This document shows, one piece after another, positions 7,000-12,913 of a DNA stretch of 64,000 bases (within the stretch, counting starts at the first letter, position 1; every line of letters begins with the position of its first letter). A program made the position numbers and the translations under genes. The notes under the pieces are model-generated. The model saw nothing but the letters and a program-made list of their open reading frames with translations, was not told the origin of the DNA and searched no databases. The stretch is from sequence record OZ240615.1; one strand, written 5' to 3'.

Positions 7000-7347
7000 T
7001 TACGCAGTTGCAACGTCAGCTTCGTCAACAGAAGTCTGAGCCGTTTCAACTGGTACAGCTACATCGCTGCTTTCTTTTGGGAAAAGCAGCGCCTTCAGGT
7101 TTTTGTAAGTGTCGGTGACGTAGGTCACGATCAGCAGACCCGCTACCATATATGCCGCGACTTCGACCGCCAGGCTCAGGAAGAACATCGCGAAGAAGAT
7201 CAGGATTGCCATCAGAATCGTGTCGAATACGAAGCTACCTAACGCTTTACCCTTCTCAGTGATAGAGTAGGTAGTGCTTTCGGTATCGCCTTCAACAACG
7301 GTTTCTTTAGCGACGAATTGTGCGAAAAACGATTTGAATTTGTTCAT
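7000..7347 (-). CDS. two-TM membrane protein
   Basis: Central hydrophobic hairpin; AAAAGGT SD. Confidence 0.7.
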   Translation of the reverse strand: MNKFKSFFAQFVAKETVVEGDTESTTYSITEKGKALGSFVFDTILMAILIFFAMFFLSLAVEVAAYMVAGLLIVTYVTDTYKNLKALLFPKESSDVAVPVETAQTSVDEADVATA

Positions 7348-7430
7348 GATATTTACCTTTTAGATGGATTGGATAATAACTACATTTGAGAGAGTACTAC
7401 TAACACCGTTGAGAGACGGTGGCCTAGAGC

Positions 7431-7547
7431 TTAAATAAACTGTACTGCCGCGATTACGATCAGCGCTAAAATACAAGCTGGGAGGACAGCCAAATCCAGA
7501 GCAATAGCCATTGCCCCAGCCCCGAATAAAGAGAGTGCGTTTTTCAT
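7431..7547 (-). CDS. 38-aa hydrophobic peptide (not in ORF track)
   Basis: Manual: MKNALSLFGAGAMAIALDLAVLPACILALIVIAAVQFI*; start overlaps upstream stop (TAATG). Confidence 0.6.
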   Translation of the reverse strand: MKNALSLFGAGAMAIALDLAVLPACILALIVIAAVQFI

Positions 7548-7717
7548 TACGCCGGCTCCCCATGGTCTGTGTTCATCCATTTTCCGGCATTAGCCTGGGA
7601 ATCGATGATAGCGCCGACCATACCGGCCACAAAAGCAATAAGAATCGCTGGAACCACTGTCAGTTCAAACATAGCTGAAACCAACAGAACAATAATTAGC
7701 ATGATGAAATAAGTCAT
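7547..7717 (-). CDS. 56-aa membrane peptide (start revised to MTYFIM)
   Basis: GAGG SD before ATG at 7717; two hydrophobic segments. Confidence 0.6.
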   Translation of the reverse strand: MTYFIMLIIVLLVSAMFELTVVPAILIAFVAGMVGAIIDSQANAGKWMNTDHGEPA

Positions 7718-7731
7718 TTTAATTACCTCTT

Positions 7732-7890
7732 TTAAAGTCCGTATGAGATTGCCATGATCAGGAAGAAAGGGGAAAGCGCATACCAGGTAATGACACTTAC
7801 AACCCCGTAACAAATAGCCATCGGTATACTCACGCCGAAGATGAAAAGAGTGATGAAAAATCCCATTAGGAAGATAATTAATTCTTTCAT
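7732..7890 (-). CDS. 52-aa membrane peptide (not in ORF track)
   Basis: Manual: MKELIIFLMGFFITLFIFGVSIPMAICYGVVSVITWYALSPFFLIMAISYGL*; GAGGA SD; first gene after promoter motif. Confidence 0.65.
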   Translation of the reverse strand: MKELIIFLMGFFITLFIFGVSIPMAICYGVVSVITWYALSPFFLIMAISYGL

Positions 7891-7963
7891 ACTTTCCTCT
7901 TAGACCTCTTAGGTCAGTAAATGGATGTTTAGTTATCAGAAAAGCGTTATATCTTTCCTATTT

Positions 7964-7991
7964 CACTGTAGCAATATATACATCAAAAAAA
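7964..7991 (-). promoter_or_regulatory. Putative phage early promoter, copy 1
   Basis: Matches shared motif TTTRA-N4-TATAT-N2-C-N5-TG on minus strand. Confidence 0.7.
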
Positions 7992-8048
7992 CTGCATTTC
8001 GATTCTTAAGAGTTTTTATGACCCCTTCTACAACACAGGCTCTCTACG

Positions 8049-8588
8049 ATGAAAAAACTCACTATTTGGGGACTCCCCGTCCCTTTACTCGGTTTTCTTC
8101 ACTGGTTCGTTTTTCTATTGATTTATTTCTTTGCGTTAATTATTTGTGTTTTTGTCACCCCGTTCCTTCCTATTTTCGCAACTAAGGAAGGTAGACTCCC
8201 TACGTGGTTAGCCTGGTTTGATACCCCAGATAACACCCTTGATGGGGATTCAGGCTGGAAAGAGAAACATTCGCTTTGGGTAAAATTTTTACCTGATTGG
8301 GCTGAGACTTACGTGGCCAGAGTATTCTGGTTATACCGTAACCCTCTTTATGGTTTCTCGATCAGCGTTCTAGGGGCCCCTAAGGATAAATACCTCCAGC
8401 CGGTTCTGGACGGTAAAGGCTTTGACGTAAAAGGGACGTATAAGTCGCATTACTGGATGGTTTATTTCATGCGGGATGATCATGTCAAGAAACGCCGTTT
8501 TAAAGTGTATATCGGATGGAAACTCAAATCGGAAGGATTTGATAAATATCAGTTCGCTTTTTTGATTAACCCTTTCCAAACGCCGTAA
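8049..8588 (+). CDS. conserved phage membrane-associated protein (WFDTPDNTLDGD type)
   Basis: N-terminal TM; WLAWFDTPDNTLDGD and WLYRNP motifs recur in phage proteins of unknown function. Confidence 0.6.
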   Translation: MKKLTIWGLPVPLLGFLHWFVFLLIYFFALIICVFVTPFLPIFATKEGRLPTWLAWFDTPDNTLDGDSGWKEKHSLWVKFLPDWAETYVARVFWLYRNPLYGFSISVLGAPKDKYLQPVLDGKGFDVKGTYKSHYWMVYFMRDDHVKKRRFKVYIGWKLKSEGFDKYQFAFLINPFQTP

Positions 8589-8600
8589 TTGAAACAAAAA

Positions 8601-8628
8601 AAAAGAGAGGGCAAACGCCCTCTCTTTT
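8601..8628. terminator. Bidirectional terminator
   Basis: AAAAGAGAGGGC-AAAC-GCCCTCTCTTTT between convergent genes. Confidence 0.8.
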
Positions 8629-9068
8629 TATATTCTTTTTAAAGAATCGATTTCCAGCGCCACTTCAAATTCGTAAAGCATTCGCCCGAAGAAGGTCGCA
8701 ATTGTGAGCAGCCCGAGGAGGTATTCGTGATGTATCATCAACAGAATTGTAAAAGTCAGTGCAACGATGATTCGCTGACAAACATTCATTCCGCCTACAA
8801 AGGTGATGTGTTTTTCTGCCTTTTCAATGATCACTTGGCGCATCGCAGGCGTCAGGACGGCGCGTGTTATATCGGGCAATGAAACGTATTGATAAAGCAC
8901 CCAACCTAAACGACCGAGAATGAGTGCTACTGCCCATAGACGAACCAGATCAAAGGCTGTTTCGTTTTGCTTAAAACATAATACAGCGAGTACTACGCAA
9001 GAGAGCAGTGAGCAGACTTTAGAGGTGAGGGTAGAGAGGTAGAACATCTTTGTATTCCTTTTCTTCAT
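8628..9068 (-). CDS. multi-TM membrane protein
   Basis: Four hydrophobic segments. Confidence 0.6.
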   Translation of the reverse strand: MKKRNTKMFYLSTLTSKVCSLLSCVVLAVLCFKQNETAFDLVRLWAVALILGRLGWVLYQYVSLPDITRAVLTPAMRQVIIEKAEKHITFVGGMNVCQRIIVALTFTILLMIHHEYLLGLLTIATFFGRMLYEFEVALEIDSLKRI

Positions 9069-9080
9069 GAATTGTCATAA

Positions 9081-9108
9081 TTGTCAGGGAACGGTTGTTC
9101 CCTGACAA
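9081..9108. terminator. Stem-loop downstream of the endonuclease gene
   Basis: TTGTCAGGGAAC-GGTT-GTTCCCTGACAA; no clear U-tract. Confidence 0.5.
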
Positions 9109-9156
9109 CGGACGGAGATTAGTTACAGGTCAGAACGAGCTTCCCTTGGATGTGGG

Positions 9157-10125
9157 TCACGGATGTGACTCATCTTTGCTTAAACTTTTTAAATCAGCAT
9201 TAGGATCGATATTTGTTTTAATCCACCCTAACATTTCTTCAGTTAAATTAAACCATTCCGTAGAACCTCCGTATCCGGGTATATTCCAACCGGCATTATT
9301 GGGTGAGAATGAATCTTTAAACTCTTTTTCTAATTTTGCAGCTTTATACCCATCTTTGAACAAACAATGAGTGAAAAGGAAAGAATTGAAACCTAAATGT
9401 TTTGCAGCAGCCGCAGAAAGTAAAGCACGAATACGGTGAAGAAGATTCTTAGTAACACCGACTTTTATAAATTTAAAGTCATCGCTAACTAGAAAATAAA
9501 CCGACATCGGAAACATTCTACTGAAAAAGCCTCCGCAGGTAGGACAACCGCTTTTATCGTATAGGTGGGTAGCCGGTCGTTGTAAAAATTTACCATGGTC
9601 TTTACAAATTATTACGACATCTTTAGCTATGTTGATATAATCAACAAGCGAATAGTCGTAACGATCTCCGTGAATATTCCTGGCACTCTCAATAAATTGT
9701 GCCGTAGTCATTCTCAAAGTATCATGAATGCACTTCGAGCAACCACGTTGTTTAATTCCCAGATGATTTCCTGGTGACTGTTGAAACTCACCATGTACTT
9801 TACAAATTATAGTGACGGGATGATGTACACCGACATAAATACTTTTACTATAATCGTACCGATCGCCATGGATTTCCTTAGCCTCAAGAATAAATTCTTC
9901 GGTAGTTTTAGTCGTAGCTTTGCGATGTCTTTCTTTACCGCATTTAGGACAACTCTGTCCCTCTAAATGTTTTCTTGCTTTTTGTTCAAATTCACCATGT
10001 ACCGGACAAATTATTTTAATAACCCCATTAGAGCCGGTATAGATTACTTTTGAATAATTGTAAAAATCGCCGTGAATCAATTTAAATTTCTCTAATACTT
10101 TCTCCGTTTTAATTATTTTACTCAT
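9157..10125 (-). CDS. Putative homing endonuclease: zinc-finger repeats (CxxHG...HxxGxGCxxC) plus GIY-YIG/T5orf172-like C-terminal domain
   Basis: Three repeats such as YSKSIYVGVHHPVTIICKVHGEFQQSPGNHL...GCSKC; C-terminal SVYFL...IKVGVT...EKEF...GSTEWF. Start revised to MSKIIK because the longer start lies inside a terminator. Confidence 0.75.
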   Translation of the reverse strand: MSKIIKTEKVLEKFKLIHGDFYNYSKVIYTGSNGVIKIICPVHGEFEQKARKHLEGQSCPKCGKERHRKATTKTTEEFILEAKEIHGDRYDYSKSIYVGVHHPVTIICKVHGEFQQSPGNHLGIKQRGCSKCIHDTLRMTTAQFIESARNIHGDRYDYSLVDYINIAKDVVIICKDHGKFLQRPATHLYDKSGCPTCGGFFSRMFPMSVYFLVSDDFKFIKVGVTKNLLHRIRALLSAAAAKHLGFNSFLFTHCLFKDGYKAAKLEKEFKDSFSPNNAGWNIPGYGGSTEWFNLTEEMLGWIKTNIDPNADLKSLSKDESHP

Positions 10126-10157
10126 TTTCCACCATAGTGTAGCAATTAGAAGATAGA

Positions 10158-10187
10158 AGAGTGTGACGAGCTTCCCCGTCACACTCT
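10158..10187 (-). terminator. Stem-loop/terminator after the exported-protein trio
   Basis: AGAGTGTGACG-N8-CGTCACACTCT. Confidence 0.65.
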
Positions 10188-10192
10188 TTATT

Positions 10193-10693
10193 TTAGTTGC
10201 AGGTTAATACGAGTTTCCCTTGGATACGCGAAACGCCATATGGCATCTGTTGCGCATCCAGGTTGATCTTCGGAGCCAGCGCCAGCGTTTTGGTATTACC
10301 TGCGATATTCTGCGCTTGTGCAGCATCAGTCCACGCGTATTCCACATTGTTAACGAATACGGAAGTTTGATCGCGGTTGCTCACCGTCATCAGGTTATCG
10401 GCAAAGTCGAAGCGACCAGTGTTTTGGGTCAGTTTCGCTTCAGTGAGGCGCCAGTTTTTCTGGGCCGTGTTGCTGGTCAGCACGAAGTTGATCGCCTTAC
10501 TGTTATTAGTACCGGTTTCGCCTTTCAACAGGATACCGCCGACTTGAACACCGTTCGCGTAATCGATACCGCAGGAGATTTGAGTTTGGTTGTATTCTGC
10601 GTCCCAGACCAGTTCATTGGCAGCAAAAGCCGAAGAGGTCAGTGCCAGAGCGATTACGGAAACAGCGATTTTGATAGATTTCATTTGATACAA
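10193..10693 (-). CDS. exported pilin-like protein
   Basis: Signal peptide ending AFA; beta-strand-like pattern, two Cys near the ends, C-terminal G-x-L-x-L strand. Confidence 0.5.
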   Translation of the reverse strand: MYQMKSIKIAVSVIALALTSSAFAANELVWDAEYNQTQISCGIDYANGVQVGGILLKGETGTNNSKAINFVLTSNTAQKNWRLTEAKLTQNTGRFDFADNLMTVSNRDQTSVFVNNVEYAWTDAAQAQNIAGNTKTLALAPKINLDAQQMPYGVSRIQGKLVLTCN

Positions 10694-10744
10694 TTCCTAT
10701 TTGAATAAAGAAAGGTTTTAGTTAAAAACGACGAGAGTTTACTA

Positions 10745-11188
10745 CTATGGATCAACCTGCATGGCACGCTGAGAATCCATTTGTTGATTCTTTTCCATGC
10801 GATCCATTTCCATCTCCAAACGTTTAATTTGGAGTTCTTTCTGACGGCGACTCAAATCAGCGAGTCTTTCACATGACTCTGCCATTTTATCGTCGCCCCC
10901 GAGAGGGATACTGATGCTAACGTAACCGCCTTTATCGTCATTAGCATAACGATACTCGCTGCCGTTATTTCCGTACGCACCAACGTTGATTGTCGCCTGA
11001 GGACGACTAACCTCACAGCTAATATCACCGTTTTGAATACGGCCGCGGTTTTCTGCGATGTTGTTGGTGATATAAGGAGCATCAGCAAAGGCGGTACAAG
11101 CCGTTACCATTGTTACAATGAATAAGAGAATTTTATTCGAGATCGACATTGAAACATGCCTCTGGCTGAATTTCCGATTGAGGGACAA
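10745..11188 (-). CDS. exported protein with C-terminal coiled coil
   Basis: Signal peptide ending AFA; two Cys; RRQKELQIKRLEMEMDRME heptads. Confidence 0.6.
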   Translation of the reverse strand: MSLNRKFSQRHVSMSISNKILLFIVTMVTACTAFADAPYITNNIAENRGRIQNGDISCEVSRPQATINVGAYGNNGSEYRYANDDKGGYVSISIPLGGDDKMAESCERLADLSRRQKELQIKRLEMEMDRMEKNQQMDSQRAMQVDP

Positions 11189-11504
11189 CCTGCATCGCGC
11201 AGATCATTACGTATTTTTTACCGTTACTTCTCTCCCGAATAAATTTATTATTGACTTTGATAGGGAAGGTTGCCCTTTCTCCACCGAAGACATATTTTTT
11301 ATACGGAACGCCGTTTTTGTCGGCGATTTTTTTATCTTCGACGCGAAATATAAAATCAGAAGATTCTTTCGAATCAACAAACATCTCAACAACTGTATAG
11401 TTGTCGTATCCGATCGGTGTTACCCGCTGCACCGGGCCGAAATAAAATGCCATGGCATTAACAGAGAACAGCGACAAAAGAGTAAGTAGTAATAAGCGTT
11501 TCAT
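11133..11504 (-). CDS. exported Ig-like/chaperone-like protein
   Basis: Signal peptide ending AMA; beta-rich pattern; two C-terminal Cys. Confidence 0.55.
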   Translation of the reverse strand: MKRLLLLTLLSLFSVNAMAFYFGPVQRVTPIGYDNYTVVEMFVDSKESSDFIFRVEDKKIADKNGVPYKKYVFGGERATFPIKVNNKFIRERSNGKKYVMICAMQVVPQSEIQPEACFNVDLE

Positions 11505-11533
11505 TCAATTTCTCGGTGAAAAATAATAGAGGG

Positions 11534-11559
11534 AGTGAAGGGATTTAAATCCCTTCACT
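11534..11559. terminator. Perfect 26-bp palindrome/terminator
   Basis: AGTGAAGGGATTTAAATCCCTTCACT. Confidence 0.6.
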
Positions 11560-11567
11560 GTATAACC

Positions 11568-11984
11568 TTATTTGCAATGACGGCGCGGTTGATGGTTAAA
11601 GTTATTCTTCAAACGCTCCAGTGAACTTTTAGATGCCGGCGGTTCGGTGACTTTAGTGTTGTTGATAGATACAACATTTTGCTTTCCGGTGCACGGCCAA
11701 ATTTCAAGAATTAATTCGGCTGCATCGTCTTTTTCCAGGCCACCATAAACTTCGGAAAGAAGGTAGTAATCTGAAAACGCCGCTGCGTCTAAAATCAGAT
11801 CAGAGATCTTAGAACCCGCGACTGGGTAAAGTTGACTAACAACTAACTCCCCATCCAGTAGATATTCCGCTAAGGTAATTTTGGGGGTAGAATAAACCGC
11901 TTTTACTTTAATATCCTTAACGGAAAATTTACTTGAGGCGATTGCTTTCTGAATGTTCTCAATAGTGTTTTTAGCTAATAACAT
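11568..11984 (-). CDS. hypothetical protein
   Basis: AAGGAG SD; first gene after promoter motif. Confidence 0.65.
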   Translation of the reverse strand: MLLAKNTIENIQKAIASSKFSVKDIKVKAVYSTPKITLAEYLLDGELVVSQLYPVAGSKISDLILDAAAFSDYYLLSEVYGGLEKDDAAELILEIWPCTGKQNVVSINNTKVTEPPASKSSLERLKNNFNHQPRRHCK

Positions 11985-12044
11985 GTGAAACTCCTTTTAA
12001 ATGGTTTAGTTTGGTTTCGTGAAAAGGTTTTATTATTCCTTGTT

Positions 12045-12072
12045 CACCTTAGAAATATATATGTTAAAAAAA
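12045..12072 (-). promoter_or_regulatory. Putative phage early promoter, copy 2
   Basis: CACCTTAGAAATATATATGTTAAAAAAA on plus; fits motif. Confidence 0.65.
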
Positions 12073-12088
12073 TTGGAAATCAAAAAAA

Positions 12089-12120
12089 AAGAAAGAGAGA
12101 GGGTTTCCTCTCTCTTTCTT
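12089..12120 (-). terminator. Intrinsic terminator
   Basis: AAGAAAGAGAGAGG-GTTT-CCTCTCTCTTTCTT with A-tract. Confidence 0.75.
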
Positions 12121-12124
12121 ACCT

Positions 12125-12430
12125 TTACTCGACCTCTTTCAAGCCAAGTAAAATATCGGCTTTTTCTCGCGCTACTTTCTCTGAATGAGTGAGACCGTGA
12201 CCTTTACGCTGATGTCCGCACATCCAGCAACTGCAGTTACAAGGAGTGGTCGCAACCCGCCCGATAATACCTTTATCGGTTTGAGGTTTCATGTTGAGAA
12301 AATAAACGTTTGCATTCCAGTAGCGAGAAACTTTCTTTTTCTTCACTACCTTTTTGAACCGACGATAAGCGCGATCGCGTTGTGCCATAATTCTGAATCC
12401 CCTATATATCCCCGTGGAGAACATCCCCAC
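12125..12430 (-). CDS. small basic protein with CxCSCxxC metal-binding motif
   Basis: TPCNCSCWMCGHQRK; Lys/Arg-rich N-terminus. Confidence 0.6.
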   Translation of the reverse strand: MGMFSTGIYRGFRIMAQRDRAYRRFKKVVKKKKVSRYWNANVYFLNMKPQTDKGIIGRVATTPCNCSCWMCGHQRKGHGLTHSEKVAREKADILLGLKEVE

Positions 12431-12469
12431 GGGCAGATTGGTTTTTCAGAATGACGGTAGTACCGCAAG

Positions 12470-12913
12470 TTAGGCTGCATAGGCTTTTTCTACCCCGGTT
12501 AAAATTTCACAAAGCTTTTCGTTTTCGAGCTCACCGAGACCCTCAATGAACCCCTGCAAAGCTTTAATCGCGACCTTGAGATTACGACTTCCGCCGCTCC
12601 AATAATCCAAAGACAAAGGAGCGAAGTAGCGATTTTCGTGGAAACTAACACCTGCGGGTGAGCGAATATCAAAAAGAGGAACGTAAGGGATCACGTTCCG
12701 ACTGATATCGGTTACGATTCCGTCAGCGGATTTAACGGGAAAGAGATCGGGGAAATAAACCAACGTACTCCCGTCTTTCGTCTTCACAAACAAGCCGAAA
12801 TTAATACGGAGAGACCCTGGTCGGTCTACGGTAATAAATTCCCCAAAATCAGCCTTGTTTCGTTTTGTCCAAAGTGCTTTACGACCTTTAAAAGTACAAA
12901 GCATTCGAATCAC
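12470..12913 (-). CDS. hypothetical protein
   Basis: ORF track; packing. Confidence 0.6.
   Translation of the reverse strand: MIRMLCTFKGRKALWTKRNKADFGEFITVDRPGSLRINFGLFVKTKDGSTLVYFPDLFPVKSADGIVTDISRNVIPYVPLFDIRSPAGVSFHENRYFAPLSLDYWSGGSRNLKVAIKALQGFIEGLGELENEKLCEILTGVEKAYAA

Follow-up and report, generated by a model that had tools for sequence, protein, structure and literature searches.

What can a pilin-like protein contribute to virulent phages when just two small proteins accompany it from phage to phage? Pilin folds of the donor-strand type have been described in bacterial chaperone-usher systems, which depend on a chaperone of two domains together with a large usher. The question is raised by a locus in the genome of the Klebsiella jumbo phage vB_KpM_Centimanus (299,730 bp), of which a stretch of 64,000 nucleotides (nt), here called the window, was analyzed; its position 1 is position 186001 of sequence record OZ240615.1. 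Window positions 10193-11504 contain three genes that are arranged head to tail on the minus strand and are publicly annotated as CENTIMANUS_00217, 00216, and 00215. Their products are called P1, P2, and P3, in the order of transcription. A sequence-only reading of this DNA had likened them to a minimal pilin/chaperone system without an usher. Here, we describe the cassette as an operon of three genes that is conserved among large virulent phages of Enterobacterales and moves horizontally, and we tentatively propose that its products constitute an exported envelope complex around a pilin-like subunit, probably for exclusion or envelope remodeling.

Conservation, distribution, and mobility of the three-gene operon

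The description of three adjacent, co-oriented genes was borne out by the minus-strand open reading frames (ORFs) and by the public annotation. Using tblastn, P2 and P3 were detected in the same 24 phage records, 21 of which also contained P1. The order P1-P2-P3 was identical in 13 out of 13 contexts compared, which comprised five phage genera, metagenomic phage contigs, and one Providencia chromosome; the homologues are thus syntenic, as the sequence-only reading had presupposed. The five genera are Maaswegvirus, Siatvirus, Miamivirus, Eowynvirus, and Henunavirus. Window positions 9000-12500 are identical to vB_KpM_Centimanus and about 96% identical to the jumbo phage FBKp24 (genus Maaswegvirus), in which the trio corresponds to gp143-141. 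The trio is also present in Siatvirus KpLz-2_45, Miamivirus Miami, and Eowynvirus Eowyn, as well as in eight metagenomic phage contigs. In the Erwinia phage pEp_SNUABM_01 (147 kb, Vequintavirinae), it is situated inside a tRNA gene array (L005:1361-6498), a kind of location where accessory genes typically land. The flanking genes vary by lineage and include genes for thymidine kinase, tRNAs, an S1-domain protein, and an exonuclease. Because the flanking genes differ between lineages, it follows that the trio moves as a unit.

P1 and P2 are separated by -17 to +10 nt, and P2 and P3 by -4 to +63 nt. The P2-P3 spacer varies in length in natural populations, as one metatranscriptome contig contains an insertion of 15 nt (a TAC repeat) at window position 10739. 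The mean pairwise identities of the three proteins are 33%, 47%, and 51%. In all three genes, 0.11-0.42 non-synonymous differences per site were found versus 0.58-0.97 synonymous differences, the latter being mostly saturated, and all three genes are under purifying selection.

Outside of phages, the module is rare. A search of 185,579 bacterial species representatives retrieved only one 592-bp scaffold, and a search of a plasmid collection did not yield a match to the trio. The P3 family is small; a word search found 12 clusters, and 11 representatives were matched in a search of 1.84 billion proteins. The P2 profile matched 67 clusters. The sole bacterial chromosome that was found to carry the trio is that of Providencia rettgeri (JBEEVP010000011; L016:1-2413 and L016:5667-6903). 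There, the trio is surrounded by a broken TacA/TacT pair and transposase (insertion sequence) remnants, and an integrase gene is located about 5 kb beyond. It lies 3.2 kb downstream of a chaperone-usher operon that encodes an usher, a PapD-like chaperone, and two subunits, a single case that may be a coincidence. The Providencia copy stands alone, and therefore the trio needs no other phage gene nearby; its persistence without phage neighbors fits a self-sufficient envelope function. In all likelihood, P1, P2, and P3 form one functional module.

Export signals and cysteine pairs

All three proteins start with a leader that consists of a K/R start, a hydrophobic stretch, and an A-x-A site. Cleavage is predicted to occur between AMA and F in P1, between AFA and D in P2, and between AFA and A in P3. 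The leaders were kept in all 13 cassettes compared, and the mature N-termini, which are among the most conserved parts of each protein, were conserved as well. In addition, the N-terminal stretches matched the leader parts of Stx2B and BhsA models. The signal peptide calls are based on the sequences, on their conservation in the 13 cassettes, and on these leader-only matches.

The mature part of each family contains two invariant Cys residues, i.e. C102/C117 in P1, C45/C93 in P2, and C38/C162 in P3. A further Cys within the leader of P2 is not conserved, and the possibility that P2 is a lipoprotein was therefore rejected. Thus, both the Sec signal peptide and the Cys pair that the sequence-only reading had ascribed to each protein were confirmed, and it is highly probable from these sequence patterns that all three proteins are exported.

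The predicted fold of P3 resembles pilins

P3 was modeled with AlphaFold2 (AF2) and a 13-sequence alignment. The model had a mean predicted local distance difference test (pLDDT) value of 86.7 and contained strands at residues 38-42, 65-71, 76-87, 107-111, 114-116, 133-140, and 153-162. The chain closes with a strand, and this last strand aligns to the F strand of pilins. In a Foldseek search of the PDB, the best rows were CfaB (E 1.5e-3), CS17, the pilin domain of PapG, CooA, and CS20. The similarity of the last gene to CFA/I-type pilins, which had been noticed from the sequence, was thus recovered, with CfaB, CS17, CooA, and CS20 as the best solved matches, at modest scores.

VIA-align was used to compare the model with 48,161 representative chains. 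FimI (Z 6.2) and FimA (Z 6.1) were at the top, both below the value of 8, under which, according to the warning of the tool, Z may reflect a common arrangement. The first twelve chains also included CS17, the pilin domains of FimH and PapG, CfaE, CfaB, CsuE, and CsuA/B. In a second inspection, about 45 of the top 50 chains were chaperone-usher pilins of every class (Z 4.7-6.2). The pilin superpositions typically covered 105-110 residues at 3.5-4 Å and reached the last residue of the model. As Z values below 8 can be generic, the pilin likeness of P3 rests on the consistency of the ranking and not on the score. Among the 30 clusters nearest to P3 in language-model features, the only named ones were the SEF14/CS22 major subunits (0.94), SCPU (0.92), and SEF14/Saf-Nte (0.92). 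A fold search in BFVD retrieved unnamed phage proteins only, and the ESM Atlas contained no model of P2 or P3. Overall, the model comparisons make a pilin-type fold of P3 fairly probable.

Residues 22-37 of P3 form a conserved N-terminal extension (E-Q-V-W-x-A), in which E24, V26, W27, and A29 are invariant. We hypothesize that this extension is a donor strand. It does not form a strand in the model, and for this reason an open groove of P3 is inferred rather than seen. The disulfide C38-C162 connects the start of strand A with the penultimate residue of the protein. In the homologues of P3, the tails after the invariant C-terminal Cys have lengths from 1 to 31 residues. Two homologues, P0014 and P0015 (L009:492-1076 and L007:4001-4555), have 21-31 extra C-terminal residues; otherwise, the family ends 1-2 residues after the Cys.

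These results bear on the idea that P3 is a decoy for the fimbriae of the host. P3 would then be an orphan pilin that is taken by host PapD-type chaperones to ushers, where it would cap type 1, type 3, or other pili and block them as FimI or PapH do, and P1 and P2 would assist or stabilize it. FimI, the inhibitor of type 1 pilus assembly, was indeed among the best matches of P3 (6swh_B, Z 6.2; 7b0w_I, Z 5.8), with scores that equaled those of FimA to within about 0.5 Z. Also, the Klebsiella, Raoultella, Erwinia, and Providencia hosts carry many chaperone-usher operons, and the location of the chromosomal copy near such an operon would suit a decoy, although this neighborhood is one case. However, PapD-like chaperones anchor the C-terminal carboxylate of the subunit, whereas the tails of P3 vary in length past the invariant Cys. 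Because some homologues have the long C-terminal extensions, capture by host PapD-type chaperones is unlikely, which argues against a decoy. Moreover, a disulfide ties the C-terminal Cys to the beginning of strand A, the module always supplies two further proteins of its own, and P3 has no sequence similarity to any host pilin. We therefore regard a decoy function as highly unlikely.

P1 is predicted to be a single Ig-like domain

The mature part of P1 was modeled by AF2 with a 16-sequence alignment. The model (pLDDT 93.6) showed a complete seven-strand Ig-like sandwich with the disulfide C102-C117, in line with the earlier description of P1 as a beta-rich protein of 123 amino acids (aa). Ig-like folds, on which the sequence-only reading depended, were thus predicted for both P1 and P3. 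A fold search with P1 retrieved 525 chains at Z of at least 5, which included Ig-like, Fn3, and macroglobulin domains, with a best Z of 8.1. Foldseek listed CfaA, FaeE, and MSP/PapD-like domains amid many others. The first domains of the chaperones Caf1M, DraB, and FimC reached Z 6.6-6.7, compared to Z 7.8-8.1 for unrelated Ig domains. The only invariant residues of P1 are F, P, C, and C; the conserved Arg/Lys pair of the chaperone cleft is missing, and no match to PapD_N was obtained. P1 was therefore rejected as a PapD-type chaperone, because it is a single generic Ig domain that has neither the two-domain architecture nor the conserved basic residues. The predicted fold is compatible with a chaperone-like role, but not specific for it.

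Pairwise comparisons of P1, P2, and P3 with hhalign matched only the leaders, with the addition of one stretch of 24 columns in P1 and P3. This link (probability 62%) connects the region of the sixth strand of P1 (F-P-x-x-V...K-x-V-x-I-C) with the last strand of P3. The two proteins may be very distant paralogues, of which P1 would have kept a seventh strand that P3 lacks, but the alignment gives only a faint hint of a common origin.

Alternatively, the resemblance to pilins could be a generic Ig-fold coincidence, and the trio could comprise three periplasmic binding proteins that act independently or in loose cooperation and serve a different purpose. They might bind, e.g., peptidoglycan, capsule intermediates, or an outer-membrane protein, influence the timing of lysis, or counter an envelope-based defense. 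P1 is equally similar to hundreds of unrelated Ig-like domains, the scores of P3 are weak (Z 5-6 and the Foldseek E of 1.5e-3), and none of the libraries scanned contained a functional family annotation. In addition, genes for small predicted membrane proteins and a DUF7338 gene just downstream of the cassette suggest that the neighborhood as a whole is directed at the envelope. However, pilins ranked first for P3 with each of three methods, ahead of unrelated Ig domains, and the P3 chain stops precisely at its counterpart of the pilin F strand. Joint action is favored by the strict co-inheritance and by the translational coupling. A generic coincidence is therefore possible but doubtful.

P2 is predicted to contain a hairpin and a short helix

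The features of P2 were read from a 36-sequence family alignment and from heptad and alternation analysis. The mature N-terminus is conserved (D-x-P-Y-I-x-N-N), and the residues A-D-x-P-Y and N-N are invariant. Two predicted strands, at about residues 53-60 and 75-84, show a strict alternation of hydrophobic residues with small or polar residues, and the second one ends with S-I-P. The alternation in the second strand is as would be expected of a donor strand or a membrane strand. The pair C45-C93 links the region that precedes the first strand with the beginning of an amphipathic C-terminal helix (about residues 94-125). Judged from the alignment, P2 is a disulfide-stapled beta-hairpin that is followed by a short amphipathic helix. 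The C-terminal coiled coil that had been described before was thus found in part, as an amphipathic helix of about 25-30 residues with two to three heptads, and nothing longer is present.

Scans of P1, P2, and P3 against Pfam, PHROGs, NCBIfam, and PADLOC yielded only one family above threshold, phrog_37374, which was matched by 7 of 7 P2 members and has no assigned function in PHROGs. In the Pfam scan of the P2 family, 14 of the 36 members matched OEP, and at most three matched any other family. All OEP matches were below the gathering cut-off of 22.0 bits, the best having a score of 21.7 bits. They always aligned P2 residues of about 48-115 with profile positions of about 38-107 out of 187 and covered one partial repeat. 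In E. coli TolC, the two halves place profile positions 2-187 at residues 26-209 and 232-427. From this mapping it follows that OEP positions 38-107 represent the membrane hairpin of TolC and the early part of the descending helix. Furthermore, the second hairpin of TolC and the P2 strand both end with the pattern h-S-h-S-h-P-h.

Other comparisons did not recover this similarity. Alignments of P2 with TolC and CusC by hhalign had probabilities below 2%, and hmmsearch against both gave negative scores. An hhalign comparison with four aligned OEP repeats gave P 0.2, with the best path in the equivalent region. Profile searches of the PDB sequences came back empty, such that no OEP chain was retrieved by the P2 profile, and the language-model feature matches of P2 were uninformative. 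Membership of P2 in the OEP family was therefore rejected, as the scores were below the cut-off, one partial repeat was covered, and no profile comparison was significant. The likeness to a TolC hairpin is kept as a lead, which is possible but, on sequence patterns, somewhat improbable.

If this lead were correct, the trio could be a self-contained system for the secretion of fibers. P2 would form a TolC-like pore in the outer membrane in place of the usher, and each protomer would contribute one hairpin (e.g., six protomers for a barrel of 12 strands). P1 would serve as a periplasmic escort with a single domain, and P3 would polymerize by donor-strand exchange into a surface fiber or coat. 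A virulent phage would then coat the infected cell, or decorate it with fibers, without machinery of the host or of the classical chaperone-usher type. Such a system would account for the near-threshold OEP matches in a constant register, for the correspondence of this register to the membrane hairpin of TolC and the beginning of its descending helix, and for the common strand-end pattern and the alternation in both P2 strands. A pilin-like P3 with a conserved N-terminal extension would also be expected. Paired incomplete barrels have been reported in phage outer-membrane proteins (10.64898/2026.10.24.761521), which likewise counts in favor of fiber secretion. However, the OEP likeness was not confirmed by hhalign with TolC, CusC, or the four repeats, by hmmsearch, or by an OEP chain in the PDB. 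Also, mature P2 has only about 112 residues and a helix far shorter than the TolC tunnel, and a virulent phage has little time to profit from a fiber. Secretion of a fiber by the trio is therefore unlikely.

Proposed envelope complex

Profile searches of the whole Centimanus and FBKp24 genomes found neither an usher (PF00577) nor a PapD_N domain (PF00345). Also, in 12 of the 13 contexts, no usher gene or PapD-like gene was present within the flanks read. The lack of an usher, which the sequence-only reading had pointed out, therefore extends to the whole genome, and presumably a classical usher-dependent pilus is not built. A literature search did not find a paper describing the trio. A preprint on the envelope proteins of huge phages deals with sortases, PspA, and outer-membrane proteins of the beta-barrel type; pilin-like proteins are not covered.

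We propose the following, tentative model. The three small disulfide-bonded proteins would be exported by the Sec pathway into the periplasm of the host, where they would join in one complex located in the envelope; such a physical complex is reasonably likely. The open sheet of P3 would be completed by the strand of a partner, as in donor-strand complementation. Candidates for the donor are the alternating second strand of P2, the invariant N-terminus of P2, P1, and the extension of another copy of P3. The helix of P2 would mediate its oligomerization, at the outer membrane or close to it. The complex would alter the envelope of the infected cell to the benefit of the phage, most plausibly by exclusion of competitor phages or by masking of receptors.

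Several points weigh against this model and the pilin likeness at its center. In the Foldseek search of the PDB, P3 had no match below E 1e-3, and its best Z of 6.2 is below the level that the tool regards as distinctive; models without a true match typically reach 7-8 at best. None of the 13 P3 members matched a Pfam family, the P3 profile did not match any PDB sequence, and of the 11 representative clusters, none of those scanned or aligned bears a pilin family. The conserved N-terminal extension of P3 is not a strand in the monomer model. No functional match was obtained in PADLOC or PHROGs, and a role in exclusion or masking, which is suggested only by analogy with the periplasmic exclusion proteins of phages T4, P1, and T5, is rather doubtful. 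Low-depth contigs from three metatranscriptome runs cover parts of the cassette, which is no proof of transcription. Environmental runs (wastewater, food, and silage metagenomes) carry the stretch, but give neither the timing nor the level of expression.

If the trio assembles, it would represent either a reduced means of stabilizing or polymerizing pilin-type subunits, or a novel tool with which phages remodel the Gram-negative envelope. Possible effects on the envelope are exclusion, receptor masking, and interference with fimbriae. The module is carried by Klebsiella and Erwinia phages considered for therapy or biocontrol, and it could affect the competition between phages in cocktails.

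Gene layout and neighborhood

The coordinates of the cassette and of the adjacent features are collected in Table 1. The start codon of P2 is preceded by GAGG 9 nt 5' of the ATG, and for this reason a longer ORF that starts with TTG (147 aa) is unlikely. For P3, AGGA is found 10 nt 5' of the ATG. An upstream TTG start, which would result in 166 aa, was rejected because it is too near to this AGGA. Thus, the third protein had been recognized correctly as an exported product, but its length had to be corrected from 166 to 163 aa.

Table 1. Features of the three-gene cassette and its surroundings (window positions)
Feature	Position	Strand	Description	Basis
Terminator-like hairpin	12089-12120		Upstream of promoter candidate	
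Sigma-70-like promoter candidate	12054-12083	-	9/12 consensus matches; upstream of transcription unit	
CENTIMANUS_00218	11568-11984	-	138 aa, without signal peptide	ORF list, annotation
P1	11133-11504	-	123 aa; predicted signal peptide residues 1-19 (nt 11448-11504); mature part 104 residues	Translation, AF2 model
P2	10745-11149	-	134 aa; predicted signal peptide residues 1-22; 17-nt overlap with P1	Translation, alignments
P3	10193-10684	-	163 aa; predicted signal peptide residues 1-21	Translation, alignment, AF2 model, fold searches
Intrinsic terminator-like hairpin	10157-10188	-	14 pairs; directly 3' of P3 stop codon	Terminator scan, sequence
Homing endonuclease	9157-10125	-	323 aa; DUF723 zinc fingers and T5orf172/GIY-YIG domain	Pfam, PHROG, annotation
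Remnant of ancestral P3 3' end	9119-9178	-	Last ~43 nt coding; one internal TGA	Family-profile match to positions 147-165
Old P3 terminator	~9075-9118	-	After remnant	DNA alignment to FBKp24

The annotation of FBKp24 contains a promoter at the place equivalent to the promoter candidate. CENTIMANUS_00218, which lies between this candidate and P1, is probably co-transcribed with the trio. It had no family match in the library scans. The gene is found upstream of the trio in close relatives only, and unrelated genes occupy this place in Miami, Eowyn, and pEp_SNUABM_01; it is outside of the conserved module.

Downstream of the cassette, window positions 7000-9068 contain minus-strand genes for small predicted membrane proteins (115, 38, 56, 52, and 139 aa). 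The same region includes a gene for a DUF7338 protein on the plus strand (8049-8588, E 7e-43). This arrangement suggests an envelope-directed gene neighborhood downstream of the cassette.

The gene for a homing endonuclease was inserted at the 3' end of P3, and it is missing from FBKp24. The remnant of the ancestral P3 end and the old terminator, which were displaced by this insertion, are nearly identical to the P3 end and terminator of FBKp24. The present P3 gene finishes with a recoded copy of that strand, its frame remained intact after the invasion, and the C-terminal peptide that the sequence-only reading had compared to pilins is this recoded version. In several environmental runs, variants were found in which P3 is joined directly to a terminator of the FBKp24 type, without the endonuclease gene. 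A DUF723 endonuclease gene (447 aa) also directly follows the P3 homologue of an unrelated phage contig from a metagenome (L025:4053-5396). The conserved end of P3 is suggested to be a recurrent homing target.

Comparison with known systems

The closest counterparts of P3 are the chaperone-usher pilins, i.e. those of class 5 (CfaB, CooA, CS17, CS20), type 1 (FimA, FimI), and the FGL/archaic types (SEF14, Saf, Csu/SCPU). P3, which is Sec-exported and has about 140 mature residues, shares with them a predicted Ig-like core whose final element is the C-terminal strand, and a conserved N-terminal extension. In contrast to these pilins, it does not belong to one of their sequence families, its disulfide is a different one, and its homologues have variable C-terminal tails. 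It also differs in being encoded by virulent phages, in a genome without a PapD-like chaperone or usher.

P1 resembles the PapD-like chaperones (FimC, Caf1M, DraB, CfaA) in that it is an exported protein with a predicted Ig-like sandwich and is encoded beside a pilin-like gene. Unlike them, it has one domain of 104 residues instead of two domains, and it lacks their invariant basic residues. P2 has in common with the TolC-family channels (OEP, PF02321) the register of hairpin and helix and the strand-end motif with a conserved Pro. However, it has one hairpin in about 112 residues, compared to two full repeats in about 450 residues.

Virulent phages use periplasmic proteins for exclusion, such as T4 Sp and Imm, Sim of phage P1, and T5 Llp. 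To our knowledge, no exclusion phenotype has been described for the trio, and no sequence or fold relation to these proteins was found. They are single proteins, whereas the module described here is a fixed trio. Like them, however, P1, P2, and P3 would be small accessory proteins that are sent to the envelope, dispensable for the structure of the virion, and mobile among phages.

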